Assembly (NCBI RefSeq): GCF_052425735.1
Contig: NC_135761.1
Location: forward strand, 46,066,001-46,130,000
Reading direction: 5' to 3'
Length of the DNA: 64,000 bases
Origin: Oculina patagonica
Taxonomy: Eukaryota
Shown here: piece by piece, positions 12,251 to 32,208 of the stretch
Layout of the letters: each line of letters begins with the position of its first letter
Position numbering within the stretch: the first letter of the stretch is position 1
Program-made: the position numbers and the translations under genes
Notes under the pieces: model-generated
What the model was told of the DNA's origin: nothing
Databases searched by the model: none
What the model saw: only the letters and a program-made list of their open reading frames with translations

Positions 12251-13922
12251 TTACTGCTTCCACTGGAAGTAATTTCACATCAGGCTACAAAAACACTTGT
12301 AAATATCACTTAACACATTTAATAATCAATTGTCACGAAATGAGTTCCCTTTGGTTAACTATTAGCAACGTTTTAGTGTGTGAAAGACTTGTACGAGTAC
12401 AAATTTGCGTTGTTAATCGTTTTAGGTTAAATTAATATTAGCGCCTAAAGACTTGTACCATGACAAATTGCGTTCTTAATCGTTTTAAACTTTGCTGCCT
12501 TCGAGCGCTGAACCCCTTACATTCTTAATTGGTTATGTGACGTAAGATTTGGGCTACTCACGTTTTTGATTGTTATCATATAACGTTTGTAAATTTGACA
12601 AGTCACGTTTTTTCAACAAGAACGGAAGTGCTGAAGCACAACTATAGAGTGACACTTTACAAGTCACGCGCTTTGATCACCCACAGCGGAAAGTATTCCC
12701 TTGAGAAATTAAAACAGTCCCTTGAGAGTTAACAAGAATGCGATCCCTTCCGGTTCAGATTTTACCCAACGTAAACGCTATTCTCCTACTTTTTGCTTGT
12801 AAACAAGCAAAAAAAGTCGAAAAAATTATCGGTAATGCGACATTATCACTCAGTTTAGAATTTGTTGGCTGAAATCTCAAACACCTTCAGTGCATGTGGG
12901 AGATATGTCTCCTTCCCTGGCTATAAACACCCTTGGGGCACATGTTTGCACTTTACACAATGCAATCTTCAAATATCAAAAAAATGGTTTACAAATGACA
13001 GCTGAAAAAGCATATACCAGTATGCTGAAAGAAACACTGGATGGCTAATATTAAGATGAGCAAGATGCACCATGTTACATTTACATTTTAGCGTCTGTAT
13101 AGCCAAGTTTGAAGGTCCTTCCAGTAATACAATTAAAATGGACACTGATGAACCAACACCTAACATTGTTAGTCCTTATTGCAACATGTGGCCAAATGTT
13201 GGATTTTGTTTAACTGACGTCTGAATTGAATTAAACTTGTTCCAACAGGATGGTCAAATTGTTCCAACGTTCTTAATGACTGGTCCAGTATCCTGAGGGA
13301 AACAGTTAATTTTGTTTCCCAAGAATCTCAATTCAGCTCGGGAAACATTGTTATCAGAGGAAACAAAATTAACTGGTTTCCCTAGGGATCAGTCATTAAG
13401 TGTTTTGTTTTATAGCACAACGGGAGCTTGTTGGTCATCATTACCAGGCAACATTGCAATGTGACCCTCTGACGTCATAGATTTTGCAATGTTGGCTGCT
13501 CGCAGACTTGGCGTGAAACAGTTTTTATTGTTAGGTGTCATATGACCTTGAATAAGCCAATAAGAGTGCATACTGATGGGGAAAAATTACTAGCTATACA
13601 ATGGAAATCTCTGTTGCAACCTTTTGAGCAGGGCAAAGTGTTATTTACCATTTCAAGAGAACATGTGTTGACTGGAAAGAAGTTATTACAAGAATGGCTG
13701 TTCTTAAAATGTAGAAACTTTGTGGAGATATGTTGCTGTCTATAAAAATGTATGATCAAACAGACACTTAAATTACAAAAATAAATAATTGTACCAATCA
13801 TTACCTAATGAACTGAAAGAATTATGACATTTTATATGTAGATTAACATACATTGTAAAAAAAAAATTATTATTTCAAGTTACTTTTTTATCAATATATT
13901 TAAATGTTACTATGTTTGCTTA

Positions 13923-14145
13923 GCATAACACGAACTGCATTAAGATGGACACCGGATAGTGGAAGAAGGAAGAAAGGACGTCCACGGGAGACTTGGAGGA
14001 GGACGATCGAGGCAGAAATGAAAACAGCAGGGAAGATGTGGAAAGAACTTGAGAAGGCAGCCATGGAAAGGAGCAATGGAAATCTCTGGTCTCAGCCTCA
14101 TGTGCCTCCTAGGCGCGAAGAGGATTATGTTATGTTATGTTATGT
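13923..14145 (+). mobile_element. 5'-truncated RTE-like LINE 3' end with (TTATG)n tail
   Basis: Encodes ITRTALRWTPDSGRRKKGRPRETWRRTIEAEMK, typical of the C-terminus of RTE-type ORFs; 12-bp TSD TATGTTTGCTTA at 13911-13922 and 14146-14157. Confidence 0.8.
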
Positions 14146-14354
14146 TATGTTTGCTTAAAGTTCTATATACCGATAATCTAAAGAAAGTGTTCTTATTTAT
14201 TTTCATGGATTTTTAAATATTTGATTTAAAAAAATAGTATAACCACTTTAATGGAAAAAGAAAAATTGAAAGGTACCGGTAAATTAACAAAAGTAAACCA
14301 TGCCCCCAGTTGGGTCTTGATCCTTTGTTTATGTTGGAACTGCCTGTAGAATCT

Positions 14355-17300
14355 TCATTCCAGCTTCGATGGATCAATCATGTGCCTGCTGACATTTCTT
14401 GCACCAATCAATAAACAGCCACAGAACAAAGAAGCCAGTTCAAGAGCAACAAAAACAGCTCCCCAGTCATAGGACTTGCTGATTGTCGTCAGAGGAATTC
14501 CTGCAAGGGTCGCTCCAACTGGGTACAAAAAAAAATAAGAAGAAGCCATCAATATGCTCATATCAATATGTTATTCCCCACACGTTTTTCAACATGCTGT
14601 TTGAAATGAGCCAATCAAAATCGATGCATACTGGTGTTGGTTTCATTAAAAAAGAGCCCACAAGTTCAGAATGTCATGCTAGTGGGTTGTGATTGGCGAA
14701 TTTCAATCCATCTCATTTGTCTAGCACATCGAAAGATGGATGTCGATAGAAAGCCACTTTGCACGTAACACTGAAAGCCGGTGATAATTGAGTTTTTAGA
14801 GGTTGTAAAATCATATTTATCACAACCTTAAAATATTTGAGGGAAATATTACATTTGTGGTAAATTTTTACACTTTACACTAGTGGCTTCTACAATTACC
14901 GGGTATTATCTAACTTGCTTTTACAATTCCCCAACCTTTGCCTTCCCTTTTTCCAGTGAATCAACCCTGGTGATCTGCCTTGCCTTATATAAAGTAACTA
15001 GTGGTAACTATTTAACAGAATAAGATCTCACCATTTGCTGCAAGGGCAACAATCGCATGCGATGTTCCAGACAGTCCTGGGGGACCATTCTCCATGGCTA
15101 AGACTCCATACAAGTTAATGGCTGTGTAAAGTGAAAATCCTATGCCGAATATCAATGCTGAGATAAACCACTGCAATGGAACAAAAGGCATCTAAGTACT
15201 GAAAACCTCCAATGTTGTAACAACAGGGCTTTTTTTTTTTTAAAGTAAAACCAGTGAGCAGCACGTCTGCGAACTACTTGAGTTGTAAAACTTTTTTATT
15301 TTCTCCTACGCGTTTCGTGTGACTAGTGCACACTTCTTCAGGGAGTTTAACAATACAATCAAGTATACCTGTATATATACCTAGATACAATTCTGCATTT
15401 CGCAAAAAAACACCTACGGATATGCGTATACAAACCGCTAAGTAATCTTAAACTGTGGGCCCCAAATAGTTATGTCACACTCAAAGTATGTCACACCTTT
15501 AATATTTTTCCGCCTGTTTCCTAGACGCATTACTTAGCGGTTTGTATACGCATATCCGTAGGTGTTTTTTTGCGAAATGCAGAATTGTATCTAGGTATAT
15601 ATACAGGTATACTTGATTGTATTGTTAAACTCCCTGAAGAAGTGTGCACTAGTCACACGAAACGCGTAGGAGAAAATAAAAAAGTTTTACAACTCAAGTA
15701 GTTCGCAGACGTGCTGCTCACTGGTTTTACTTTAAAAAATTCCAACTTTGCTTTTTGGACAAGTTCCCTTGCCCATCAGGCAAGTGAAAATGAAAAAGAA
15801 ACTTGCTGGGCAGAAAAATCCATTTGTCCTGGATGACCAGCAGCACATTTTCCGAGCACTGAACAAAGGCTTGGGAAATTATCAGGATATTGGCAAAATG
15901 CACATAACATTGTTTCCTACTTTTACTCTTTGCAATTTGATTTAACTTTTACAAATCAATTTATATGTATAAATAAAAGGAAAACATTCCATACCAATGA
16001 TGTAGTTGATGTCACAGCTGTATGTAAGAGGTACAAGCATGCTAGCTGAATAAATGCAAAGTAAATCATGGGAGAAATTCTGGGGCTGGACACTGTTGAC
16101 ATTCCATACTATGAAAAAAATACAAGCTATGTTAAAGTAATTTTGTTGACAACATGTTGCTAATTAATACATATAAAAACATGCAAGCATAGCCCAAAAA
16201 ATGTAGGGCACAGGCCTTCCTGACCTTCCACACAATCTACTCTGGTAACTCCAAAAAAATGCATATTTCAATGCATATAGTGATTAGTTTATACAAATTC
16301 TGTTCAAACTAGAATGTAATAAGAAAATATAAACGACGATTACATATTCTTTACATAGATGGTAAGATAGAGTCTACTGATTGTCGCATTGGCTCAACTT
16401 TAACTAAGCCTAAAGAAGTATAATGGCATGCCCCCTTCCTCCCATCCCCCTCCCCCCAAAACAACCACCAAGCCTTCCCCTCAGGCTCATAAAAAAGTTA
16501 ATGGTCCTGAAATAATTTTGTGTCCTACCTTTCGCACCAGTTTGTCAGTTACATAACCAGATGCTACACTGCCAAAGAGTCCACCAATTTCTAAAAAGCT
16601 TATAGCAATACTACCTGAGGAAAACAAAAAACAATCAGTGAGTTACACTGCTACATGACAAAATAATGGGGCCTGTAGAATTTTGGATTCTAAAAACTGA
16701 GGTCAAAGGTTGAAAAAGTTCAAATAATAGGTAAAGTCTGCATTGAGCCAAGTGGCCATACCACTGAAGCTAAGCTTAGCCCAGTTTCCAAAGCATGAAG
16801 TGACTAGGAGTATTTCTACTCCCCCTGGATGGGTGCTAGTCCAATGCAGGGTTACCCCTCTCCCCAGCATTAGTTTGCCTGTAAGGCCATAGGGAGGTGC
16901 AGTGGCCTAATGGTTGGTGCACTGGACTCCAGATCAAGTGGTCTGGGTTTGAGCCCTAGCCAGGGTCATTGTGTTGTGTTCTTGGGCAAAACACCCAGGT
17001 GTATAAATGGGTACCAGGGATTTTAATGCTGGAGGTCAACACAGGTCATAGACTTGCTCCAAGTCGCTCGTTAGATTCGCAGGAGACCGCTGGATACAGA
17101 AACGGAGGGCGCGCGCGGGTATGAGAAACAAAATGGCGGAGGATCGTTGCGGAACGAGCGACTTGTCTCACCTGCAGCGCACCAATTCTGAAATATGGCG
17201 TCACCGGTGGATTTTTCCACCGGTGACGCCATCGAGATTATGTCAATCATATTGTATTGCGCGCGAACTTACTGAGCGCGCTGTGCCCGCCAACTTAGCG

Positions 17301-19794
17301 CGCGCTGCTCGCGAGACAGGCTTGCGTTTAACTTTTCACCTCTTGAGCAGACTTGTTTCCTTCTCACATCGGCTGTTAAACCGTTTTAGAACAAACAACA
17401 CAAATGTCTTTTTTGTACATGTCCCTTTTAAATCTTATAGAAATGAGAGAGCCATCAAGGGCCTTGAGTATGATTTCCCACAAAAAAGGGAAGAAAAGCG
17501 CAATTTTAACACACGCCACAGCGCGCGTCAGCTGCACACGGCGTACGAAACTGACGTCAATACGATAAAAGAAACCAATTCAGTGCACACAAGCATGATG
17601 CAATTTTTCGCGGCAATAAACGTCAGCCAGAATCGATTTCCTGCAAGTGACACAAGTCGCTCGTTCCGAGCTTTTCCTAACTGTTTGTTTTCCTTCGGGC
17701 GCGCGTTCACAGAAATGAATCCCGCGTGATCTCTCGCACGCGATTTAAAAGGTGATTAAACTCAAGTGGTCTTTCTCGCTTGATTTCAAAGCGATTTTAT
17801 TTAAGTAACTATAGATGCAAAGAAAAAAACGAGCGACTTGGGGCAAGTCTACACAGGTCACTGCGATGGACTAGCATCTCATCCAAGGGGGCAGTAGAAA
17901 TACTCCTAGTCACTTCATTCTATGGAAAACCGGGAAAAGCTTTGGCCTGATGGGCCACTAGGCTCCTATTACCCATTTACACTCACTATCATATTGTGAT
18001 TTTCCTATTGTCTGCATCAAGAAGAGCTGTGACCACTCGCCGACTCCTGTTTTCACAAACAGTGTCATAAGATACCCAGCACTTAAAATCCACAAAAACG
18101 GACTCAGTAACATTGCTTTAATCTGTTCTCTCTTATTTTTCACTGTCTTTTGTTCTGTTCTTGACATCATTGTAGTTCTTTGGTTAAATTCATCCAGCCC
18201 TATCTCTGATGGAGAGTCACAAATAACACAATAAACTAAGACAGACATTACAGCTGTGCTGATACCAGGAGTGATGAACGCTGCCGACCAGCCATAGTTT
18301 GTAGTTAGAAATGCTGTTAATATTGGTGATAAGCTTGTTGCTAGGTTACATCCAGCCGTGAGAAGGCTCCAAAGTGTACCAAACTGAAATAAAGGGGGCA
18401 TACACTCTTTCAGTTCCAATTAAAAAAACATTAATTGAAACCATGACTAGGTGTAAAAGAAATGAGTGTAAATAACAGCAGCTTCCCCTTAGAGTAGAAT
18501 GTCCTTTATTTCCTAATCCATATACCGTAAAAACTCTATTAAAACCCCTCTTATTTGGGAGGTGCTTATTTCAAACCATATATCAGTAAGGGTACCAATA
18601 AAAAGTAAAGTGGACTTTTTGATGTTTAATTGCTGTTTAGTAACATTTTCACAAAATAGTAAACATGTAATTGTAAAATTTTGTAAAATGTAATTTATTT
18701 ACCCACATCACACAGAAGAGCTCTCAGGAGCTTGTTGGGACGAGCTCTATAGGCTTAAAAGTGAATGTAGTGGATAAGCAACTTTACTACACATTTCAAT
18801 TACATACAAACTCTGAAGTTTAAAACCCAACTAACAAAATTATTGTGTCTTTTGGCTGTTGTCAAACAAAGTTATCTCAACAGCCAATGAACCTTGAAAA
18901 CAGAAACAAACAAAATGGATCGCAAACTACCAATCAAAACCAACAGACATGACCTTTAAAACCGCTGAATGGAAATTCTGCTTCCTGAGAGGTCCGTTTA
19001 GATGATTGACTGCAGCGAAAAACGTAACTGTTGACTTGAGCTGAGTTCGCGTGTCATTGAAAGGCACAGGAAAAGTGTAATATCATGTTTTCTTGTTCAA
19101 CACCTGTTATGATTTACCATTTATGGCAGGGTTGGGTGGGGGGGGGGGCTTATTTAAAAGATCCAACTTCCAGAGGGGGCTTATCATAAAGGGGGCTTAT
19201 TAACAAAGCCTCTTTGTTAATAAGCCCCCCTCTGGAAGTTAAATAATTTTCCCTGGGATTCCCAGTGACCTACCCCTGGGGAAACAGGTGATTATCTAAA
19301 AAAATTCCCTCCATAATAAATGTTAAACTTACACATATATATTGACTATTCTACCCCACAAAAAAGTAAAAGGTTACCTCGTAGGGGGAAAACCATTCTC
19401 GGAGCAACTTGGTACATGGCGGCCAACCACAACCTTGTGCTAATCCATTGACGCTCCAAAGAAATGTCAACAACCATACGTTACCAGTAAAACCGATTAT
19501 AATGTTTATAATACCAGTTAATAACATTCCCGCTGTAAACATCGTCCTAGGACTCAAGGAATCAGACAAAAGTCCGCCGGTAAATTTACCGACTCCGTAC
19601 ATCGCCGCAAAGCCACTCGTTATCACTCCAAGCTCGTTCTTTTTTAATTTTAGATCCCGTATTAAAGCCGGTATAGCAAATGTGTATGATTTTCTGGAGA
19701 AGTAATAAGAGGAATAACCTAGAAACAGCGAAATATAAACCGTCCATCGTATTCTTTGATAACGATGAAAATTTGAGTCCTTCGGAGCCGCCAT
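14355..19794 (-). CDS. SLC37A4: Glucose-6-phosphate exchanger SLC37A4-like (MFS/OPA family), 6 exons, about 438 aa
   Basis: Exons 19794-19378, 18383-17987, 16614-16529, 16108-15995, 15170-15032, 14518-14355; GT-AG and in frame (1317 nt). Motifs [69 protein letters not shown]. Confidence 0.92.
15303..15345 (-). ncRNA. Minimal type I hammerhead ribozyme motif (mirror copy, sense in SLC37A4 pre-mRNA)
   Basis: Exact reverse complement of 15630-15672. Confidence 0.8.
15630..15672 (+). ncRNA. Minimal type I hammerhead ribozyme motif
   Basis: CTCC-CTGAAGA-A-GTGTG(cactagt)CACAC-GAAA-CGCG-TA-GGAG: stem I CTCC/GGAG, core CUGANGA and GAAA, 5-bp stem II, palindromic loop III, UA cleavage site. Confidence 0.8.
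16730..16880 (-). mobile_element. tRNA-derived SINE 3' part, inverted relative to the neighbouring copy
   Basis: Reverse complement of GGACTAGCATC...AGTAGAAATACTCCTAGTCACTTCAT seen at about 17868-17920. Confidence 0.65.
16892..17965 (+). mobile_element. tRNA-derived SINE interrupted by an 803-bp DNA transposon
   Basis: Head GGGAGGTGCAGTGGCCTAATGG...GGGTTTGAGCCC at 16892-16957; the body resumes at about 17861. Other copies at about 47150-47395, 62590-62872 and 63575-63725 (all -). Confidence 0.75.
17049..17851. mobile_element. Non-autonomous DNA transposon with 24-bp TIR and 9-bp TSD (AcademH-like or MULE-like)
   Basis: CACAGGTCA|TAGACTTGCTCCAAGTCGCTCGTT ... AACGAGCGACTTGGGGCAAGTCTA|CACAGGTCA; TIR 23/24 identical; CpG-rich interior. 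Confidence 0.88.
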
Positions 19795-20172
19795 GTTTGT
19801 GTTTGTATCACGTGACCAGGCGTAAAAATTTACTTTCCCTCTCCTCTCTACTCATTTGCGCACAAACCGACTTCTGTTCGTTGCAAGCGCGATGTGATAT
19901 GAATAATTTTTAACATAAAAATAAATGTTTCAAATATTAAAAAAATAACGAGAACCTCATAAACAGTTTTTTATATTTCTGTTTAGTTTTCAGAATTGTC
20001 CTTTTTTATAAAAGAGAAACTGCAAAAAGAGGTTGTATCGTTTTCAATACTTCAAAGACAGTTGAATGAGAAGTCATATCTCGATATTAAATGTGACCGG
20101 AATCTAATAGGAAAACAAGAGATTGCTATTTCGGTGCCTTCAGTGTGGCTTCTGAGCTGTTTTCTAAGCTAA

Positions 20173-20223
20173 GAAATAACTTCAACATGCGCTAAATTTA
20201 TGAGCGCATGTTGAAGTTATTTC
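20173..20223. repeat. Perfect 21-bp hairpin with 9-nt loop
   Basis: GAAATAACTTCAACATGCGCT-aaatttatg-AGCGCATGTTGAAGTTATTTC. Confidence 0.85.
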
Positions 20224-21895
20224 CTTATCACGTTGATAAACCTTTGCCTTTTAGGTTTGCATCCCTTTTTGGCCTGTTTACACAATGTACGAAATAATCC
20301 ACTAAAAAGATACTAATAAATTGACGGCAATTGTTCAAATGCAACAGAAAATCAGTATAAATGGCCGGACCAGAAGAAAATAGACACAGCTGTCCGCACT
20401 CATTTTTTTTTCGGATTTGTGCGATACTTGTGAGGTTGTCATCAAGGGGTCAAAAAAAAAGTGACTGAAAAAAAAAAAAGATAATAAAAGTGTAAAAAAA
20501 GATAAAACGAGAATCAGACAAGATTTCTCAATGTCACTCATTGAGTAAGATTCTCCTGCGTATGGCCAAACGAAATTGAATCCCACTTTGGCCGCACACA
20601 TGAGTGAAAAGGACGGAATCGAATGCCTACAAGTGTCATTTATACTGATAACTTTCAATAAGAAGGAATGATCACTTTAGCAAAATTGGTCTGTCTTTTA
20701 ATTTTTTTTCTCAGTAAAGTTTCAAATGCTGTTTTAACGTGTTTACGAGTGTTTCATTGATTTGAACAGTTTGAAAAGAGCCTGGCCTTATGCGTCAGAA
20801 CTGTAAGAGTGAGACGAGCCTCGAGTTTTCGGTATATTTTACTGCTGTCGTTAATTATATATTTTCATATATTAGCAGTTAGTATACCAATAATGACACA
20901 GCTTGCTAGCATCGTTTCTTTTGGCAAATAGACTTAAAGTTATTGCTCGGAAACGTGATAGATTTATTTTCAAAGTTGAGCAATACTTTTTTGGATCGAG
21001 TGGGCGCAGTTCTAAGACTTCTAACGTGTGGGAGCACTTACGTAAAATTTCTAGTCAAGGTATAAAAGGCGCTGATTCGTGGGTTGAAGCTAAGCGAAGG
21101 AAGATGGTATTAGTCTTTTTATTCAGTCAAATATATATGCCCAATAATAAATTCTCGCCTTTATCCGAGGATGCCAATTCAATTATATATTTTCTTGACG
21201 CAATGATTGGCTTTTTCGTTTTCCTTTTCACTTTTTGTGACAAAAAACAGAACATTTATACAGCTGCAACCTCGGGTTTCTATATGAAATGATTCGAATT
21301 GATTTTTAGTTTAGGATAAACACAAAAGCCTTCCATTGATGAAAACAATTATTAACAAGGCTGTCATTTTTCACAAAAGATGTTTGCTTAAGTCAAAATC
21401 TCAACGTTTAGCGCAATAACACATACAGAAGCTGTAGTACCTTCCTTGTTTCAAATACATGGACGAGAATAAACTCATTCGAATTCCTTTTAAATTGAAT
21501 CTGAGTTATTAAACTCCCGCGCACCGGCAATACGTGAAGGCGGGGGAAACAGGCCAATCACTTAAACAAACAAGTTGCAAAAGCTTTTCTATTGTTATAT
21601 TCAAGAAAAATCACAGAAACATGTATAATTAGAATGCGGGTAAACACAGAAATATAATGATCCGTAATTGAAAACGCGGCCTTTGAAAATGGAAAAGATA
21701 TCGTTTTCTTTTACGATCTTTAAAGTGATCTCTTTACATGACTTCCTGGTACGTCGATAAAAGCGAAGCAAGCTGGTAGACTTGAGCGTAGAAACAAAGG
21801 ATTTATAACAATTCGTAGCACCAATCAATAATCGTTTAATTTGTATTTATCCTGGATAGAAGTTGTTCAGAAAGAAGCTACACAACATTTCCTAA

Positions 21896-24800
21896 ATGAA
21901 TTCAACAGACAACCAAACTGATTCTACGCCGGCCAAGTTATTATGCGAAAACTTCGCCGAACTTATCTCGATGGCAACTATACAGTTCTTGTCATTCTTG
22001 GCTAATCTCGTGGCAGCAATAGCGATTTGGAAGCTCCCTGGCTTGGAAGAAAACAGATGTCATCTTGTGGTTCGGACACTAGTCGTTAGCGATTTGCTAA
22101 TTCCTTTATCAACGCTGCCATTTTCTATCATCTCGTATGCAAACTGTGCCTGGACGGGAGGCAAAATTCTGTGCTCCATTACAGCATTCATCTCTACTAC
22201 GTTTTTGAGCTGGTCGTTTCTCATCGTGTTTGTTATGTGCCTGCTTCGTTTTCTAGCCGTAACAAGACCTTTGTACTACAGAAACCAAATTACATGTGCG
22301 ATGGTTCAGAAGGCACTAGTTCTTGGCCTAATTTGGCCGTGTTTACATTTAATCTTGCCTGCAACGGGCTTTGGAAGGTTTCGTTTATACGAGAAGGGAT
22401 TATACTGCGCTCTCGACCTCACGTCAGAAGAGCCCAGAGGAAAAAGTTTGCTTTATGCCACAGTAGTTGAAGGAGGTCTCGTCACCGTGGCATTGCTGTA
22501 TTTTTGCACGACTATTTTGTGTTCTATTAAGAAGAAGCGAAGAGTGAATAGTCTACTGTCCGAGCAACAGCAGAGAGGGGCAGGCATTCACAAGGTTAAC
22601 AAACAACAAGGAGGCTTCGCTCGGCTGACGTTTGTGATTGTTGTGTTGTTTTGCGCTTGCTACGTTCCTTTCTTGGTAAGTATTGCAGCGCATGCAGCTA
22701 ATTAGAACAGTCAATTATAAATGGTAAACAAGTGGCTGTGAGTAGTGACATTATAGGTTTTCCAAGTAAAAAAGTAAAAACTCGAAGGGAAGAAATAGTC
22801 GCATCACCCAAGTGTCCATATAACAAGGGCAAAATTAAGTTGAATCTGAACTCTTTAAGACCCTATCAATAAACTGTCCGTAAAAGCGAAACGTCTTTAT
22901 TATAAATTTTATAATACGAATTTTTACTCAGAACCTTCCATGAAAAAGAGAACTGTCCAAAATATTTTAAGACGAAGTATCTCCATTACAGAGGCAAATT
23001 TTGGTAAATTTTGGTATGAGTTCGAAGTCAGTTCATATAAGGGTGCCCGCTGCCTGCAAAGGAAATTTACCGAGACTGTTCAAAGCTCTCGTAGGAAAAA
23101 ACAAAGAGTGGACTGGGAGAGAGAGAGGACTGGAGGCAAAGAGGGGCAGGTCGTCGAGTGCTTAGTAGCCCTGCGTGACCAGCGTTCAAAAGGAAGGATG
23201 GAGGAGGGGAGTCTGAGCGCGAGTAGAACGCAAAGCGCGATTGGGGGCAGGAGGGGGGGGGGGGGGCAGAACTCTCCATCTCCCTCCCATTTAAACGCCG
23301 GCCACGCAGGCTAAGTGCATAGAAGCGCGTGAAAGCTTGGATGGGTGACAGGGGAAAGAAAATGGTTCCCTCCTCTTCCCCTCTTAAAAATTTTGTTTGC
23401 TCGCTTTTCCACTCGCATGTCGCGCTCTTGTAAAAGAAAACGATTGCTACAAATGGAAACAAGCTTGTTTCAAGATTCTATTTTCAAACTTTTCTGTCAG
23501 TTCGATAATTCAGTAAGTCTAATGTCTCTTCACCTTGCTTTGACAATTTCAATTACCCAAACAAGCAAACAAACTAACAAAGAACAAACAAATCAGAAAA
23601 ACAGCCATCTCGACTTTTTAAAAACCAAATTCTCCAAGTAGTTTCGTAAAATGTTAAGGAGAATCTTGATTCTGATATTGTTCTGTTTGCGTTTTGTTTC
23701 AGTCTTACCGTGTTTTCATATTAATACGAGGTCCTTCCTCGTACAGCGACACCACTTACTTCTACTCGGAGCTGCTGGCTCATGTAAACCCTCTGTTAAA
23801 TCCTCTGGTTTATGTTCTGTGCAACAAACAGTATCGAGCTTCAATCAAGGATCTCTTTAAGAACTTCTGCTGTAAGAACAGATGCTGTCGCTTTGGTGAG
23901 AAATTTTACTTAACAGGTAAGTAAAATTGTATAAAAGAGGAAGGAACTCTTGCGCGGTAATTATACTGAATGCAAAGGACAAATAAGGTGGAAAGTGATA
24001 TTAAAATTAAAAGTGACTTCCGCTGTAACAAAATTGACACAAAAACGAAGCAACTTTTTGGCGATACTCGGCCTCCGAAAATTGACCGAACAAGGGCGTA
24101 GCTAGGGGAGAGGGGTCCTGGGGTGCCCGTAACTCCCGGTTTGTGAGCTAATGTTTTTTTTAAAAGGGCTACGTCACGGGGATTTCGCAGATTTTTGGTC
24201 TAAACTGCTCTGAAACTAGTGGTTGGCAACTTTACCCATGAAAAATATTATCTTTGAACATCTAAAGGAAGATATAACCTTAATTTGCCGATAGAAATCA
24301 AGTTACGGCTATTAATATCGATTTTTTGAAGACGCGCGAAAGCAGCTTGAAAAGTTAAGCCTTAATATTTCAAAGTGCAATCCATTTCCATCCTAGCCAT
24401 CCGAAACCAAAGACGCTTGTTAACAGTTTTAGTGCTCTAATATAGCATTTTTTTTTAAAAAAAAAATGAAACATTATTTTTAGGTTTCCTTCGAAACAAT
24501 ATAAATTTTGGCTGTTTAAAAATCTGGGAAAATACGTAAAAAGCCCCTTTAAGTCAACAAAATACAAACCTTATGATTTAGGTGGCGAAAACTTGCGAAT
24601 CCGAAGAATCAACATGGTTCAAATCTTTCTTTACCAGTGCTAGAAACTCCATTAATGCAGCTATTTTGTAGGCTTGTCCCTCCCCAACGCTTACTGCTCA
24701 TCTGCAAAAATGTCACTTTTAGTAAAAGACAGCGTGGTTGTCGACATGGCTGACATGGCAAACTGTCAAGTACCCTGGGTGTGACACAATGTTGTTACTA

Positions 24801-25723
24801 CGAGCCTTCGACGAGTTGTGTCCATGCCATTGATATATACAGTGGAACCCCGATAAAACGATCCTCGATATAACGATGAATATTCTATGTCCTGGCAAAA
24901 GTTACAGTAAAATGTATGGAACAGAATGCCGATATAACGATCGTCGATATAACGATATTCCCGATATAACGATGAATATTCTCTGTCCTGGCAAAAGTTA
25001 CAGTAAAATGTATGGAACAGAACGCCGATATAACGATCGTCGATATAACGATATTCCCGATATAACGATGAGAATTGAGCGAACCGAGCGTAATATCTTC
25101 CCCGATATAACGATATTATCGGTACACAGTCACAATTTAAGCATAATGATATTGAATTTTATCCAATAACATAACAGTAATCGAGTAATCTCTAACGTTT
25201 CTGACAACAACTTTGTACGATGATATACGAAAATGATACTCTGTTCTAAGCCTCTTTGTCCAGTTAAAAAGTATATGTTAGGTTTACTCCAATATAACGA
25301 TATTTTCGATTATTTTACGGCCATATCGTTATATCGGGAGTTTCGATACAACGATTCCTCGATATAACGATATATTTTATTGCTCCCTTGGCATATCGTT
25401 ATATCGGCGACGGGGTTCCACTGGATCCTGACAATGCTTAAAAGCATGCATTGGCAGGATCCATAATTCTTTCACATGTTCTTTCTTCAATTCCTTCGAA
25501 GTGGCCTCGTTATTTATTTTTATAGCAGAACGGAGTCATGCATCGACACAATTTGTTGCAAACAGCCAGATCGCGCTATGTAATGTCCTTTGTCATTTGT
25601 ACCTTTTTATTTTTATTTATTGGGATATGTTCATTATTTTTTTCAGATGTGTATGGTCGAAGCATTGAGTTGCGGAAGATGTCTGCATTTTCGACGAGAA
25701 CACAGAGCATATTTTTGGAGTAA
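21896..25723 (+). CDS. Class A (rhodopsin-like) GPCR, prostanoid-receptor-like
   Basis: Exon 1 21896-22675 (TM1-6; LVVSD, CLLRFLAVTRPLYY, GFGRF..C, CYVPFL); exon 2 23703-23916 (TM7 NPLLNPLVY, Cys-rich helix 8). Probable tail exons 25526-25579 and 25647-25723 keep frame (374 aa); without them the stop is at 23924 (333 aa). Confidence 0.85.
23166..23313. mobile_element. Short TAGCC...GGCTA element with 9-bp TSD
   Basis: AGTGCTTAG|TAGCCCTGCGTGACCAGCGTT ... AACGCCGGCCACGCAGGCTA|AGTGCATAG (TSD 8/9). Confidence 0.75.
24840..25423. mobile_element. Tc1/mariner-type MITE with an internal 96-bp tandem duplication
   Basis: TA|CAGTGGAACCCCG ... CGGGGTTCCACTG; many CGATATAACGA motifs; GAATATTCT recurs at 24878 and 24974. 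Confidence 0.8.
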
Positions 25724-28479
25724 CTGGTTCCAAACACTGAAATGCAGAATCTCGCCTCTAGATCCACAGAGAAATGCAGCCTCGAACAGCCTTACAGTTT
25801 TTATTTGTACAGAGTAAAGAGAATTGAATAAACTGTCACAAAGAGCCCCGGCTTTCAGTAGCGATGGAGTCGGAGTCCGTAAGTCGTAAGAGCGCTTACA
25901 ACTTAGCGTAAATCAAAAACTAGAGGTGTAAGTGAAGTTTTCATTTTCTTCCAATTCCGCTTCTTTTGACTCCGTACAGTGAAAACCAGATTGTCAGAAT
26001 CGCAGGCAGAAACGGAAGAACAAACCAATCACAATGCTAGTTCTCTCCGAGTACTTCCTTTCTGCTTGCGACTTTGACAATCTAATTTTCAGCGGAATAG
26101 AAAACTCTGCTCACGACTCCCTCGATCGTAACTGGATCGTAACGCTCTGCGCTTCTGACTACCGCTATAGTGAAAAAAGTGTTTAGTTTATATAATAAAA
26201 AAATCGGCTTCACTTGGTGACATGCTGGTGTCCATGATTCGTCCTGCTTAAGGTCGCGCAGGACCCTTGTATGCATTAGTATGTATTTATTTAAAGAGTA
26301 TGCACGAACTGCCGGACGACTAAAGCCGACAACAAACGAAATATTCATGAGAATGTTTGTTTGTAAACTCTTTTGTACAAGTAATTTCTAGTAATTGTTT
26401 TCAGCTTTGTGCCACGTGCGCTGGAACATAGGGAATTATCATAATTAGATTCACAGCTTTGAATATATCACACGTTGTTGTAAACATTGACTCGGAAGAT
26501 CTTCGGAAGCCTCAAAACCTGCAATTTTGTGTCCAAGTTTTCTCCGCCGATATAGAATTTCAATAGTTGATTCGCGAGGAACATAAACTTGGTGTACTCT
26601 ATTGTGCTATGACTAGAGTGAATTTTTAAATTTCCTTCTCAAAATGAAGATAGCACGTTTCAAAGTTAAGATTTCACATTTTTGCTCTCTTAGGAGCCAT
26701 TAACTTGGAGCAGTGTTTGAAATCGAAAATTTCGTTCTAGCCATAGCACAAAAGAGGTTAAGATTTATCACTAAGCTATATAATCATTTAATTTGGTGCG
26801 CTGTACTAGCTGAAAACTTGGACACAAAATCGCATTATCTGCAGTTAAACTTTAAGGGCTTGTAACATCACAGACAAAGGTCATCTCTCAGTAAAAGGAC
26901 AATCATGGTGTAATTCCATCATCCCCGAATATCCTTGTTAAATTTTATAGGAATCGATGTTCAAAATGTAGTGAATTAAAACTTTACAAGATAGCACTCC
27001 GTCAAGAAATTTGGCTAATGAATATATTAATGAGCAAGGGTCCCGCGCGACCTTAAATAAAAATTCATACCGGCATCAGTTTTTTTTAACTGAATATGCA
27101 AACAAGTCTGCTGTATACATGGACACTTTTGTACCAAAATGTGTATCTTATAATATCAAGATCTGACGAGCGCATGTGAACATTCCTGTTGCTTGTAGCA
27201 GCTCTCGTAAGCTTCTTATTCTATTGGCCCTTAAGTGTAGCAGTTGCTATTGTTTTAGGGGCTAGGCGCATTGTTCCTGTTGTTTGTTCTATTGTTCTCT
27301 CGCAAGGTAGCGAGCCATTCATGTGGAAGAGCTGCTATCAAACCTTCTGGTTACCCAAATGTTGATAATAATGTACAGTATCTTTCGCAAATATAAAGAT
27401 TCGCAAAAACAAGTCGTATCGTCCATAGGCAATAATGCTGCTTGAAGTGCAGGTTGGCAGAAAGTGACTTATGTTGATACATAAGGAAAATATCAAAGAG
27501 ATAAATTGTATTACGCTGTTAGAAGTATAAATATTAAATTTTAAGAAACTGAGTATTGTATTGTAAGTAGTGTGTTGTAAACAATTTAATTGTTATGTAG
27601 GTAGTGTAAGCAGTGTATTGCAATTGTACTGTAAGTAGAGTAAGCTTTGTATAGTAAGTAATAAGTAAGGCTTTGTATAGTAAGTAATTAGTAAAGTATT
27701 GTGTAGTAAGTAATCAGTAGTGAACATGTCACCTTGTAAGAACGTTCTGTGTGTGTTTTGCAATAAAAAAAAATAAAAAAAATATCAATAAAAAATATTG
27801 ACATATTTTTACCTTGTTTGGTAATCTGATTGCGTGTAAATGTAATTTTTGTCTCACCAAAGGCGCGTATGCCTGGGTATAAGCAGCCACCGACCTCTGT
27901 TCAAGTTTTCCGTCTATTTTGTCGCATCCTACTTGGCTCATGATATCAATTCAACCTGTATCTTTTTTTTCTGTGGTATCGAGGCCCGAGTTGTTAACAA
28001 GTCTGGAACAGTTGTTCGTTGCTGTACAAACTCAAAACTAACCAACTCCCCTGTCAGTTCCCAAATGCCAGTGGCTACATGAATATTTGCCATTTCAGCA
28101 AGTCTTTATTTTGGGGTTTCTTCCAATCTTGCTAATAAGAAGCTGATGAAAAAAATTAATTTCACCTTGCTTTATGTCCGTTATTTTATTTATACAAATA
28201 AGTTGCACAATAATTCTCTTCCCTTCACAGATTTATGTAAGTAGAATTTTAACTAAGTACATACTAGAAAATTTAGATTAAAAACTGTACACGTATCCAT
28301 ACTCCTTCTCAGGTCACTTTTACATCGCCATTGTTATCTACTATTTTTTATTACTATTACTTTTTCTATCGTACCATAAGTGTATAACCTTTAAATCCGT
28401 CAAATTGTAACTGTTTGGTTTATTGCATTGTAATGTAATGGGAACCTGCATATGTGTGTTTATCAATAAAAAAAAGTCT

Positions 28480-28755
28480 TAGAGCGATTTTCGATTGAGT
28501 ATCGTAAAACCACAACCAAATTAATCACTCTGGCCAATCACAAAGGACACAGACAGTCCAATGAACCAATCAAAACTCGAAGCAAATACATGTAGCCGGC
28601 ACGAAGAGCTGGAAATCGCGTTTTAGTGAGTCACGATTGGTTTTAGTTTTACTTCCGATTGGTTGAGAAAGTGGCGCGAGTTTTTAAAACCAATCACTGA
28701 GCGTAGCAATGCAAAACCAAAGGAAACGCGAATTACTTTCGACAGTGCAAGTGAC
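28480..28755. mobile_element. CCAAT-rich MITE (second copy at about 37017-37243)
   Basis: GAGCGATTTTCGATTGAGT.TCGTAAAACC ... AATTACTTTCGAC shared between the two loci. Confidence 0.7.
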
Positions 28756-28971
28756 AATGACTCTTATAAAATATATTTCTAAAGAAACCCCTCGCGCACG
28801 CTATATACCGCGCGCGCATTCTTTCGCTCGCGCTTATTGCCACAAACCATTGTGATGCGCAAGCTGCCCATTCAGACGTCAGGTTTTTTTTAACTCGAGT
28901 GGCATTTTCCTTGTGACATTAGAGCACAGAGAGGAGAGATTTCTTGACTGGAGTGACAATACGCGATACAA

Positions 28972-31032
28972 ATGCGCCTCGTTTTTCTTTGGAGCGGGCT
29001 TTTATGCCTTTCGTTGCTTGCCGTTTTTCCTGGCGAAGGACCAGGTAAGCTACTCGCGTGTTGTTTAATACTTAAAACAAAAATAAGCGCAGCGCGCAGC
29101 GCTACATAAGCTTACAGCTCCAAGAAGATCTTCGTTTTAGAAATGACACTGATAAAAAATATTTTCTTGCACTCATTTGGAAAATTGTGTTTGTCTAATT
29201 TGTTTCTCTGCGATACTGCCATGTAAACCACTGTTCCGTGTGTAACTGGCTAGTTATGTTTTCTAGCCTCTCTTTTAACATGTTTTGGTTTTTTTTTATC
29301 TCAAGGAATTCAAGAACACCCCCAGGGATTTAAGGGAGTGATCATCGATCGACTTCAATACTCTTGGATGACTGTAGTAAGTGTTTTGTTTAATCAGTGA
29401 GGGCGGCAAACATACTTTTTTGTAAATTTCCACCGCAAGGGTTTGTTAGAGCTGTTGCTTAGCGACATCAGTCTTCCGAACCAAGCGCGCGTGACAACCC
29501 TTGAAGTGCTCGCGCTATTTCTCGCGCCTTTTTGCTTCTCACGCATTCCTCCCCACGTGCGCGACTCGACGCTTAAAAGCGTGATTCGTGGCGCGTAATA
29601 AGCGACTGCATGCGTATAAGGTTACTTCTGATTGGACACGCAGAAAAGAATCTTCTTTCCTAGCGAAGGTTTACTAAAAACTGTTCTTGCCTAAATTGCT
29701 GATAATTGGCTTGATTTCTATGGGCCATGGGATCAGGATTATAGTGGTGGAATTTTAAAACTAAATGGGGTTAATTCATACACGGTTAGAATGGATTGCC
29801 TACTCGTTCAACTCTTGTTTTCAAACGAACGAGTTTTTTTGGCATAAAAACTCGTCGAAACAAGTTAAACGTGCACAAAACTTAAACTGAATTACGATAA
29901 CGGATGATCTAAAGTTGGTATATTTTTGTCATTCCAATCAGAAAACCGCGTACTCCTGGTACTCGTGGTACATCGAAGAACACAGTGATGAGATTTACGA
30001 TATGATCGACTGGAGTTTGGATTTCATTTTTGAGGAGAAAATCAGAGAACAAGGTTTGTAGCGCACTTTCGCCTTTCCATTTCTAATTAACCGACGTCGC
30101 TCCCCTTTCACTTTTGCTCACGAAGGGTGGGGGAGGCGAGGGGGGAGAGTGGCTTGCGTGAGCGTCGAGGATTTGCATAGCCTGCGCAGCAAGCGATCCT
30201 GGAATTTAGAAGGGAAATTGAGGCGAGGCTAAAAGGATGAAAGGAGGGGGGGGGGGGGGAGAAGAAGGAACTCTCTTTTCTCCTTTCCTGACCCCCTCGT
30301 CTTCCTTTTTTGCCCGCGCCCAAATTTTCGCGTGGCCAAAATGTGGATAACTCTGCTGGAACGCTTATTACGCAAGCAACGATTTTTGACCAGTCCCGAG
30401 TAGGAGTAAAGAAATTATAAAAACATTTTAGAATCAGGCTAAGGCGAGAGAAGAAAAAAAGCGTTTCTCTCCTTTGTGCATTGTTTTCGTTTTAGTTTGA
30501 AGTATTTCCTCTTGATCCGGCTTGATCCACGGGGGTGAGGAAAGTAGCTCTAATTGTTCTACAAACAGGAGTGCTGCGCGCAATTGAAGTCGTTTTTTGT
30601 CCACTTCTGATTAAGGTATCAATCCCAACATTCTTGAGGAGCTGCGTCAGAAGCGATTGAACAAGTTTGGCGAGTTCTTGGTGATCCTCATAATGTCAGG
30701 AGTATGTCTAAAGATGATTCGAAACGCAATCAAGAGGAGCTTTTACGAGTAAGTTCTACAATAGTGAACTACGAAATATGCTAGGGTTATGGTGTATTTC
30801 TTTTTATTCCTTATTCAAGAGTTGCTCACAGGTTTGTCGCTTAAGTTTACTCAAAAACGTCTATACCATTTACCAATCTATTTCCAGGGAGCTGAAATTC
30901 CGGCAAAAAGAAAGGCAACGAAGAGATTTCCTTAGAGGTCGGGAGAGGAGTTTACAGGATATCTGGAACATCACCATAGCAACCAACGTCAATAAAGGTG
31001 TCGGGCTTCGCGGGATGCAACGACACCATTAA
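28972..31032 (+). CDS. Uncharacterised small type I membrane protein, 5 exons, 177 aa
   Basis: Exons 28972-29044, 29306-29376, 29942-30053, 30616-30748, 30888-31032; phases 1,0,1,2 all match (534 nt). Signal peptide MRLVFLWSGLLCLSLLAVFPGEG, hydrophobic FGEFLVILIMSGVCLKMI, basic tail; TATATA at 28802 and AATAAA at 31170. Confidence 0.78.
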
Positions 31033-31345
31033 CGTTCATTTCAGCCGAAAACTTTTTGTATTATTTTGTCTGGTAAAGGTGAATCAATTTTTAAATTTCT
31101 TGTAACTACAATATAAATTCGGTGTAAGCAACGGTTGTTAAATATCCGCGTTTCTTGTGGAAAAGTGATAATAAAGATTGTGATACTAAACTATCTTGTG
31201 TTTTTTTTTCTGTCACAAATGTTAGTACCCCAACCAAGACTACAAGTCGCAGATAATTAACTGATTTAGTGAGCACTTGTGAGTTGGATTCAAATTATCG
31301 TCCTGATAAACTTGTGATTTTTCTCACCCTAAATAAGTCAGATCG

Positions 31346-31421
31346 CAACCTCATTCCCAGGGTATCTCTCTAACTGCCCCCCAGAGCGGGGAGAGAGAGA
31401 GAGACCATGGGAACGAGGTTG
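31346..31421. mobile_element. 76-bp hairpin element with perfect 9-bp TSD
   Basis: GTCAGATCG|CAACCTCATTCCCAGGG ... CCATGGGAACGAGGTTG|GTCAGATCG. Confidence 0.85.
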
Positions 31422-32208
31422 GTCAGATCGTTAATTTCTATAGATGTTGACGATATAATTTATAAACGATAACCGAAAATCCTAGTGACACGCCCTCCCC
31501 CCATTAATTCGAATTCAGTTTTGATTGGCTGTTTGGAACAAAGAATTCCTAAACGGAAGTCGAAAACGTAACAACTCTCTCATACATTCTTTTGAAACGT
31601 CATGACTGCATACATGAAGACCGGAAGTCCTAGAATCTAGGACTGGAAATCCTGTGTCCCCAGAGTCCTTTGTTTCCTCGTGCCAAGGCCCAGCCGGCTA
31701 AGAGAAACAAAAGGGCTATGGGGACGAGAATGATCGTGGCTACGTTGAAAAGCATATTTAAAACTTTCGCCTCCTTCCAACAAAACGTTCTTGTCTGATT
31801 ACTCCAAGTATGACTGCTAATATAAAAAGAACACTTAACCACAATCGCTTCTTTGGTTCTTTATTACAGTGTTTATTTAATTGATTATTGGGGAAGGATC
31901 TACTTGCTTATTATCCTGAATAATTCACAAAATCTGTTCGCGGTATTGACTATGTACAAAAAAGGTGTTGTGCTACTGAAAATATACTTCATTATGTATT
32001 CTTAAAAACACGTTTACACATACAGTATCTTTCTTTCTAATTTATGATGATTATTCTGGCAGCTCTTACATCTGTCTCGGAGATGTTCACGTCAACCTTG
32101 TTATAAAGCGGTATCTTATGTTTGGGAGTCAGTGCAGGCCCACAATCAGATGCCATCGCACGGGTCCTAACCAGTTGGTCCCTTTTGTCATTCCAATTGC
32201 TAACCTGA

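Follow-up and report, generated by a model that had tools for sequence, protein, structure and literature searches.

Penelope-like elements (PLEs) carry minimal hammerhead ribozymes that have a bulged nucleotide that separates position 9 from 10.1, a G10.1-C11.1 pair and a palindromic loop III (Cervera & de la Pena 2014, PMC4209133). In Schistosoma, dual motifs lie on opposite strands, 100-700 bp apart; in vitro, monomers of these minimal hammerheads are essentially inactive, with no detectable cleavage, and dimers have low activity (PMC4209133). PLEs typically come with inverted copies truncated at the 5' end (Craig et al. 2021, PMC8557442), palindromes have been described both where two copies meet head to head and at the 5' end of the pLTR (Arkhipova et al. 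2013, PMC3846280), and a purified PLE protein both cuts and extends the two strands of its target (PMC11167929). Dual opposite-strand minimal hammerheads, inverted pLTRs and junction palindromes are already published for PLEs (PMC4209133, PMC3846280, PMC8557442), and the foldback described here is a known phenomenon that could be well resolved, not a new ribozyme device.

The window, that is, the whole stretch of 64 kb of Oculina patagonica DNA that we analysed, contains, on the minus strand, a homologue of SLC37A4 whose match to the human protein has E 2.9e-37. Repeat analysis of the window reproduced the perfect inverted repeat that the original prediction had noticed in this gene, with arms at 15236-15446 and 15529-15739, each of 211 nt, 100% complementary and 82 nt apart. 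Exon-like ORFs bracket the foldback (an exon at ~15990-16090, and an exon with its acceptor at 15170/15171), and together with the human match they back the predicted location in intron 4. The exon-5 acceptor lies about 65-66 nt from the foldback edge at 15236, and the insertion makes up ~504 of the ~815 nt of the host intron. We consider it likely, with a probability of about 0.85, that the foldback is a young head-to-head double insertion of two 5'-truncated PLE tails whose 3' A-runs point outward (Table 1).

Table 1. Features of the foldback and of its host intron, in window positions
Feature	Position	Strand	Evidence or remark
Host intron (SLC37A4 homologue, intron 4 from first coding exon)	15171..15985, upper bound approximate	-	Exon-like ORFs, human homology
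Exon-5 acceptor AG	15171-15172	-	Sequence
Left copy: 5'-truncated Penelope-like tail, unit positions 83-293	15230..15446	-	3' end leftward
Segment absent from empty-site contig of run X2	15232..15736	.	10 other letters (GAAAAAACTT) between 15231 and 15737
Mirror-image hammerhead motif, host gene's sense strand	15303..15345	-	Predicted cleavage 3' of base 15307
Right copy: unit positions 1-293 of Penelope-like tail	15447..15739	+	3' end rightward, 6 A
Right half of family's intrinsic ~40-nt palindrome	15447..15466	+	Compared with long copies
Minimal type I hammerhead motif	15630..15672	+	Descriptor; covariance model, 55.3 bits, E 2.8e-12; covariation
Helix I of + hammerhead	15630-33 / 15669-72	+	
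CUGAAGA of + hammerhead	15634-40	+	
Bulged A of + hammerhead	15641	+	
Helix II of + hammerhead	15642-46 / 15654-58	+	
GAAA of + hammerhead	15659-62	+	
Palindromic loop III (CGCG) of + hammerhead	15663-66	+	
Predicted cleavage site of + hammerhead	After A15668	+	Hammerhead numbering

The details of the two copies fit this reading. The apparent 82-nt spacer (15447-15528) is an additional 5' portion of the right copy, and contigs of other copies, continuous from 15450 to 15711, show that it is contiguous with the right arm. At the outer ends the A-runs differ in length: the left copy has ~12 A, seen as a T-run at 15230-15241 on the + strand (the perfect arm starting at 15236), and the right one has 6. 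This matches what is found between independent family copies, which share their 3' terminus and carry there A-runs of varying length or (TTAAAAAA)n reiterations. Both arms carry the rare variant T15327/A15648 (family majority C/G) and therefore come from one source. The full ~40-nt palindrome is present in long copies of the family; at this locus its left half is missing, and the right copy is truncated no more than 3 nt from the palindrome centre. Neither direct repeat families at the foldback nor further copies of it in the 64-kb window were found.

Canonical PLE insertions (PMC3846280, PMC8557442) likewise have inverted copies placed head to head, pLTRs that carry hammerheads and bear a palindrome at their 5' end, units in tandem, and TSDs that vary or are lacking, whereas the window holds two tail fragments only and no ORF. 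The minimal-hammerhead features and the dual opposite-strand arrangement are those of the PLE motifs of PMC4209133. The coral motif, known by its sequence, nevertheless differs from the Schistosoma families in having helix sequences of its own and a helix II of 5 bp instead of the typical 7-8 bp. Metazoan non-LTR retrozymes (PMC7229834; 10.64898/2026.07.22.740005) are likewise short, non-autonomous, hammerhead-bearing and related to PLE pLTRs, but they are direct tandem repeats giving circular RNAs. The foldback has 0 direct repeats and its motifs lie on opposite strands, so that the retrozyme form for which the original prediction had allowed does not apply. The locus also resembles L1 twin priming and the endonuclease-independent insertion of LINEs at breaks: both 3'-OH ends of the target would be used, the copies are 5'-truncated, and target is deleted without a TSD. 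L1 twin priming, however, inverts different parts of one RNA, whereas the foldback arms copy the same 3' segment and form a true palindrome.

Each arm contains the predicted motif, CTCC-CTGAAGA-A-GTGTG...CACAC-GAAA-CGCG-TA-GGAG, and the cut expected after the TA at 15667-15668 agrees with the site given by hammerhead numbering. When the window was shuffled 200 times, a strict hammerhead descriptor had 0 matches; a relaxed one had 0.065 per 64 kb. With the covariance model the two arm sites were the only ones in the window at E 2.8e-12, the next match having E 0.055. From these shuffle counts and E-values, the motif is more than a chance resemblance. We then compared it across nine lineages, defined by the neighbouring reverse-transcriptase (RT) gene. 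The type I order of the core, CUGANGA ... GAAA ... UH, is invariant in all nine, with N7 and H17 varying within the allowed letters. Loop III is palindromic in every lineage (CGCG, CCGG, CG or AGCU), the bulged A is found in 7/9, and G-C at 10.1-11.1 in 8/9. Helices I and II covary: 90% of positions are paired versus 54% in shuffles, and the covariation score is 0.80 versus 0.20 (0/500 shuffles as high; at most 0.18 with the partners slid), with changes on both sides in 8/9 helix pairs, these pairing statistics being inflated by rows picked with a pairing-requiring descriptor and by a model-fitted alignment. The alignment was made with the covariance model, MAFFT having misaligned the three most divergent motifs. 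Independent support comes from positional homology, as the hammerhead has the same position relative to the ORFs in the nine lineages. In the unselected 5' half of 53 distinct family copies, strong variation was limited to N7 (A26/C20/T7) and two loop II positions, the other hammerhead core positions being at least 96% conserved. Judged by its sequence, the motif is thus a genuine Penelope-type minimal type I hammerhead with palindromic loop III, as had been claimed, and its cleavage is a prediction. The Infernal/Rfam scan suggested along with that claim reported no hammerhead family: on 681 bases the Rfam hammerhead models gave no match at gathering or permissive thresholds, even at E<=10. 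The curated models may well miss motifs with a 1-bp helix III. Neither the descriptor nor the covariance model found a hammerhead in L097, whose RT is 35% identical. The only strong Rfam match of the foldback region was the MIR821 microRNA precursor (RF00885), which we rejected as a generic long hairpin match (140.7 bits against a gathering threshold of 249).

The foldback sequence is multi-copy, at 10-60x the depth of its flanks in four sequencing runs. Related copies were indeed abundant, with 121 family matches in 93 coral-metagenome loci, many of them aligning across unit positions 1-293 at 87-96% identity. Adjacent inverted pairs in these 93 loci were all in the -/+ (head-to-head) orientation (20/20, versus 0 in +/-), and two full-length elements, L094 and L098, show the same arrangement. 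In 14/20 inverted pairs, one copy or both end at unit position 1-4, and L094 and L098 have zero-spacer palindromes centred on the centre of the intrinsic palindrome, which is the preferred head-to-head junction of the family. By analogy with these loci, the head-to-head geometry is a standard by-product of the way in which the family appears to integrate. Long copies run upstream into an RT ORF, among them L040, which is 92.5% identical to the window unit; thus, the window copy belongs to an ORF-linked family, and the Penelope-like origin proposed for it is supported. The suggestion that copies of an arm would lie beside a Penelope RT/GIY-YIG ORF was borne out for the RT ORF in coral-metagenome loci, but GIY-YIG was not detected.

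The insertion can also be compared with an empty allele. A contig of run X2 is ordinary contiguous intron sequence that holds the 10 letters GAAAAAACTT between 15231 and 15737, which indicates a replacement of 10 bp of target without TSD. Contigs of run X1 reach filled-type junctions on both sides with zero mismatches (12 T on the left, AAAAA-TTCC on the right), with junction letters unlike those of the empty allele. The insertion thus looks recent, in line with the original prediction, and is probably polymorphic; the empty site is probably also found under two related species labels. That prediction had also placed the foldback inside a MITE with a 5-bp TSD. We could not find such an element: searches with 9-mer seeds gave no terminal inverted repeats of at least 9 nt flanking the foldback, 11-of-14 TIR matching combined with 2-10 bp TSDs gave nothing credible, and the foldback has no direct repeat at its borders. 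A 7-nt repeat, GCTTTTT, near both junctions was considered as a TSD and rejected, as the empty allele shows it to be produced by the insert's own T-run.

We propose that the foldback arose in one recent retrotransposition of a coral PLE, which would have left two 5'-truncated copies of its 3' region (pLTR/tail) head to head. Most likely, reverse transcription started from both 3'-OH ends of a broken target, with the A-rich 3' end of element RNA from a single source as its template. Of the two cDNAs, one would have run 293 nt, up to the intrinsic palindrome, and the other would have stopped after 211 nt, before they were joined in the middle with the loss of ~10 bp of target. Self-priming (snap-back) could replace the joining step. 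It counts against the proposal that no GIY-YIG endonuclease for cutting the target was detected in the ORFs of this lineage. The hammerhead in each arm would be the element's own conserved ribozyme, which full-length elements carry in the pLTRs flanking their ORFs, and not placed there for the host.

Other accounts were weighed against this double insertion. A single 5'-truncated PLE tail might have undergone an inverted duplication later, at the DNA level, through replication template switching or repair of a hairpin-capped break. The 100% identity of the arms fits this, palindromic duplications can arise from DNA-level events, and a related self-priming idea exists (PMC3846280). We nevertheless regard this as very unlikely: the outer A-runs differ (12 versus 6), neither arm copies the other's flank, and a strict -/+ orientation with variable breakpoints recurs at many loci, while PLE protein extends both strands in vitro (PMC11167929). 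An assembly artefact, either a foldback chimera or a collapsed repeat, had to be considered because inverted structures of PLEs are a known difficulty for assemblies (PMC8557442) and no read or contig of the sequencing runs covers the whole foldback, whose internal arrangement therefore rests on the assembly and on analogy with other loci. However, the zero-mismatch X1 contigs reach both filled-type junctions, the same architecture is found in independent assemblies, and the spacer is family sequence with nothing adapter-like, which makes an artefact exceedingly improbable.

The original prediction saw in the foldback a self-masking ribozyme cassette, an inversion selected for antisense neutralisation of the ribozyme or for regulation of SLC37A4 via dsRNA, ADAR or Dicer. 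Its geometry stood up: a transcript of either strand would carry one sense ribozyme, with the perfect antisense made ahead of the sense copy, and the RNA is predicted to fold as one hairpin (-385.8 kcal/mol, z = -46.8) that sequesters the motif in a 211-bp duplex, 65 nt from the acceptor. Moreover, 55-66% of the foldback's sampled words occurred in RNA-labelled runs, these words being not locus-specific and not assignable to this copy. A selected function is nonetheless hardly credible. The integration mode fully explains the geometry, which was seen in every adjacent inverted pair (20/20) as well as in L094 and L098; complementarity is not maintained, since the arms of older pairs have drifted to 83-93% identity; the insert is not fixed, as another sample has a contig with the empty site; and monomeric minimal hammerheads are essentially inactive in vitro (PMC4209133). 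A self-masking function is not needed to explain the foldback anatomy.

If the foldback is a double PLE insertion, transcription of the host intron would produce the antisense arm first, and the two arms are expected to pair as a perfect duplex of 211 bp. The single sense hammerhead in the host intron would be monomeric and sequestered, and is probably inert. As cleavage of monomeric minimal hammerheads could not be detected in vitro (PMC4209133), the host RNA does not have to be shielded from a single copy. Any consequence for the host, be it small RNAs from the dsRNA, editing or disturbance of the acceptor, would be a side effect. The locus offers a natural presence/absence variant in which a perfect hairpin of 211 bp lies 65 nt away from a splice acceptor in the gene of a housekeeping transporter, and its filled site, empty site and both 3' ends bear on the poorly understood integration cycle of PLEs. 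A broader proposal, which we find unlikely, is that head-to-head PLE tail insertions in introns supply small-RNA or editing pathways with long perfect dsRNA, with silencing of the family or altered host splicing, the hammerhead being neutralised by its own antisense, and that the lineage is an endonuclease-less two-ORF PLE integrating via twin priming at pre-existing DNA breaks.

The parent element was examined at RT-selected loci, where the order is hammerhead - ORF1 - RT - hammerhead, with an upstream inverted copy and tandem units. In L094 and L098 the hammerheads lie upstream of ORF1 and ~195 nt downstream of the RT stop, and tandem units are seen in L099-L101. Hammerhead-bearing pLTRs thus flank the ORFs, with partial tandems, as expected of a Penelope-like element. 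The GIY-YIG endonuclease defines EN+ PLEs and is absent in the Athena and Coprina clades. Here, no GIY-YIG was detected in the RT ORF, ORF1 or eight longer relatives, and in the tandem units the stretch from the RT stop to the following ORF1 is too short to hold one. The RT ORF has DUF8422, RVT_1 and HTH_animal domains, and its Atlas structural neighbours with the same domains additionally carry GIY-YIG. Pfam, run on the RT ORF and ORF1, gave a sub-threshold RVT_1, a faint DUF123 match and nothing else, and a PDB sequence search with the RT gave no solved relative. The ORF1 alignment shows a coiled-coil and a basic tail and no nuclease motif. In the coral lineage the coiled-coil ORF1 is separate and the RT ORF is without detectable GIY-YIG, whereas the inverted-pLTR structure has been described as typical of endonuclease-containing PLEs. 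Incidentally, this abundant coral RT lineage lacks a detectable GIY-YIG and yet displays the pLTR, inverted-repeat and hammerhead architecture; such a nuclease-less two-ORF lineage may deserve the attention of a transposon specialist.

The intronic foldback is a real and well-supported Penelope-type twin insertion with two conserved minimal hammerheads, an arrangement usual among elements of this class and already described in kind. The perfect foldback of the original prediction, with 211-nt arms and a hammerhead motif on each strand, was borne out by a repeat search and an RNA fold. Arm complementarity was 100% across an 82-nt spacer, and the 504-nt foldback as RNA was computed to fold into one hairpin of -385.8 kcal/mol (z = -46.8 vs shuffles). 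The host gene lies on the minus strand, and its first coding exon (19351-19794) corresponds to human SLC37A4 residues 7-134 (E 2.9e-37). Exon-like frames placed the foldback between an exon at ~15990-16090 and an exon whose acceptor AG (15171-15172) is 66 nt from the left arm. With the SLC37A4 match, they indicate that the predicted location in intron 4, ~65 nt from the exon 5 acceptor, was right. The other part of the predicted context, a surrounding MITE with a 5-bp TSD, held up in none of the tests. We found neither a TIR of at least 9 nt flanking the foldback nor a TIR-plus-TSD combination or direct repeat abutting it, and a contig of the empty site showed ordinary uninterrupted intron sequence, contrary to a MITE context. 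In the following intron of this gene, 14700-14807 had a summed contig depth of ~18,000-32,000 vs ~40 in the flanks in all four runs, with many different loose contig ends on either side, which suggests a super-abundant short, SINE- or MITE-like repeat. An 84-codon frame (13904-14158, +) with a ...GRPRETWRRT... motif resembles the C-terminal end of a different retroelement ORF and is probably an unrelated TE fragment in a downstream intron.

Coordinates of the foldback and of related features in the window and in metagenomic loci
Feature	Position	Strand	Remark
Inverted-repeat arm, left	15236-15446	-	211 nt
Inverted-repeat arm, right	15529-15739	+	211 nt
Hammerhead motif	15630-15672	+	right arm
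Mirror hammerhead motif	15303-15345	-	left arm
Zero-spacer palindrome	L094:880-1437		arms 279 nt
Zero-spacer palindrome	L098:700-1675 (at least)		arms at least 488 nt
Intrinsic palindrome equivalent	L094:4248-4295		48 nt, 3' terminal repeat just after RT stop
Two-ORF lineage	L094:1467-4243
Two-ORF lineage	L096:1470-4405
Two-ORF lineage	L098:1491-4255
Two-ORF lineage	L097:262-3277
Two-ORF lineage	L105
Two-ORF lineage	L110

Logan contigs of four runs were aligned to 14700-16300. Depth over 15240-15740 was 10-60 times that of the flanks, and contigs of other copies ran unbroken from ~15450 through the right arm, so that the "spacer" prolongs the right copy on its 5' side. The foldback is thus a 211-nt copy (-) that meets a 293-nt copy (+) head to head. 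With an exact 21-mer of the motif as bait, 93 coral-metagenome loci were retrieved, in which the 293-nt unit had 121 matches. All 20 adjacent inverted pairs were -/+, with 3' ends outward, and none was +/-, although some of these loci are the same site in different metagenomes and independent pairs are fewer; truncation points varied.

In the sequencing run X2, a contig with a depth of 25, vs ~45 for neighbouring sequence, joined 15231 to 15737 via ten other letters. This is an empty site, and the insertion therefore replaced ~10 bp and made no TSD. The contig table suggests empty sites in runs X3 and X10 too, where flank contigs extended 27-50 nt beyond the junctions without matching the arms. 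In X1, zero-mismatch flank contigs reached filled-type junctions on both sides. Arms that are 100% identical, copies elsewhere with 98-99% identity to the window's, and an arm identity of 83-93% in older inverted pairs further suggest that the insertion is recent, as had been proposed, and its subfamily recently active.

Some copies extend at least 600 nt upstream of unit position 1 (the 5' end of the 293-nt unit), reaching a frame of 613 codons that contains RT blocks and has its stop ~30 nt ahead of the unit; L040, a locus 92.5% identical to the window unit, likewise continues into the RT frame. Homologues were proteins of ~583 aa from Porites, Oculina, Acropora and Stylophora with DUF8422, HTH_animal and sometimes RVT_1, and Atlas structural neighbours of ~735 aa had the same domains plus a GIY-YIG nuclease, that is, the architecture of Penelope-like elements (PLEs). 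The RT family counted 16,434 representatives at E<=0.001. RT-selected loci were laid out as hammerhead, ORF1 (~324-344 aa), RT (~580-634 aa) and hammerhead, with tandem units in L099-L101 and an upstream inverted copy in L094 and L098, in agreement with published PLE organisation (PMC8557442, PMC3846280). ORF1 encoded a coiled-coil protein ending in a basic Arg/Ser/Lys tail. GIY-YIG was not detected in the RT ORF, ORF1 or eight longer relatives, and nuclease loss inside EN+ clades is documented in the literature. The two-ORF coral/marine PLE-type lineage from which the foldback stems (table), with DUF8422, RVT_1 and HTH_animal in its RT ORF and no GIY-YIG detectable in either ORF, nevertheless shows the terminal-repeat, tandem, inverted and hammerhead architecture described as typical of endonuclease-containing PLEs. 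At the locus of P0116, a distant RT relative of 876 aa (JGI sample 3300050821), the next ORF, of 382 aa, matched RNase_T exonuclease and, faintly, RNase_H_2 and could be a different accessory nuclease of that lineage.

Rfam reported no hammerhead, whether at the gathering threshold or, over a 681-nt region, at E<=10; the sole strong match, MIR821, was a generic long-hairpin match below threshold. The motif was therefore not matched by any hammerhead model, but it nonetheless has the features that Penelope minimal hammerheads show beyond the core boxes (Cervera and de la Pena, PMC4209133), including a short helix I, the G10.1-C11.1 pair and a helix III of 1 bp capped by a palindromic loop. Within the window, a structure-aware descriptor matched the two foldback motifs and nothing else, vs 0.065 (relaxed) and 0 (strict) matches per 64 kb in shuffles. 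Among 53 distinct copies, conservation was 93% in the motif's 5' half, which had played no part in the selection, compared with 67% and 79% in the sequence upstream and downstream of the motif, respectively. The three strongly variable sites of this half were two loop II positions and N7 of CUGANGA (A 26, C 20, T 7), which is the only core position that hammerheads leave free.

To remove selection bias, loci were chosen solely by their neighbouring RT protein. The minimal hammerhead was at the same place in each of nine lineages defined by RT and spanning 83% to 31% protein identity, lying ~100-140 nt before ORF1 and/or ~195-270 nt past the RT stop. The core was identical, the helices differed yet stayed complementary, and loop III (CGCG, CCGG, CG or AGCU) was always palindromic. 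In the covariance-model alignment, 90.1% of cells paired vs 54.2% in shuffles, both sides had changed in 8 of 9 helix pairs, and the covariation score was 0.80 vs 0.20 in shuffles (0/500 as high; slid partners <=0.18); as rows were picked by a descriptor demanding pairing and aligned to the model, independent support rests on positional homology relative to the ORFs. The covariance model matched only the two foldback sites in the window (E 2.8e-12; next E 0.055). L097, an RT-selected locus of two-ORF layout whose RT is 35% identical to the L005 ORF, gave no hammerhead by descriptor or covariance model in the 260 nt upstream and 740 nt downstream covered by its contig.

The original prediction also saw in the foldback a possible self-masking cassette. 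Part of this stood: the antisense arm is transcribed first on either strand, and the predicted duplex should sequester the single sense motif. Nothing indicates, however, that the foldback is a selected masking device. Its geometry follows from the mode of integration, the arms of old pairs lose complementarity, the insertion is not fixed, and monomeric minimal hammerheads are essentially inactive in vitro (PMC4209133). Runs labelled as RNA, a kind that was guessed, contained 55-66% of the 31-mers sampled from the foldback; since near-identical copies exist elsewhere, the result shows only that family sequence is present in transcriptomes.

As to its origin, both arms carry T15327/A15648 where the family majority has C/G, and hence come from one source. 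DNA-level duplication of a single copy was considered, but the arms end in unequal A-runs (12 A and 6 A) and neither holds a copy of the other's flank, which is more in keeping with two priming events. Long copies have an intrinsic perfect palindrome of ~40 nt directly past the RT stop, with unit position 1 at its centre. Zero-spacer, 100% perfect palindromes at the 5' end of the full-length L094 and L098 were centred exactly there, several loci had 35-87-nt extensions at the same centre, and at least one copy ended at unit position 1-4 in 14 of the 20 inverted pairs. In the window, the right copy ends within 3 nt of the palindrome centre, and the left copy breaks off 82 nt before reaching it. 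In Adineta vaga, palindromes both at head-to-head junctions and at 5' ends of terminal repeats had already been described and read as self-priming (PMC3846280). At AT-rich sites, the purified PLE protein of an anole cuts both target strands and extends them, and insertion in that system needs no hammerhead cleavage in vitro (PMC11167929). Consistent with the latter, no family copy ended at the predicted cleavage site (after unit position 222). At the other end, independent copies of the window subfamily share one 3' terminus, followed by A-runs of varying length or reiterated TTAAAAAA units and then unrelated flanks. Reiterations of the last 8-11 nt were frequent, as (TTAAAAAA)n in L019, L056, L066, L070 and L074 of the window subfamily and as (TTTTATTAAAT)n in an older one (L005, L035), which suggests that the RT slipped or initiated repeatedly at the end of the template.
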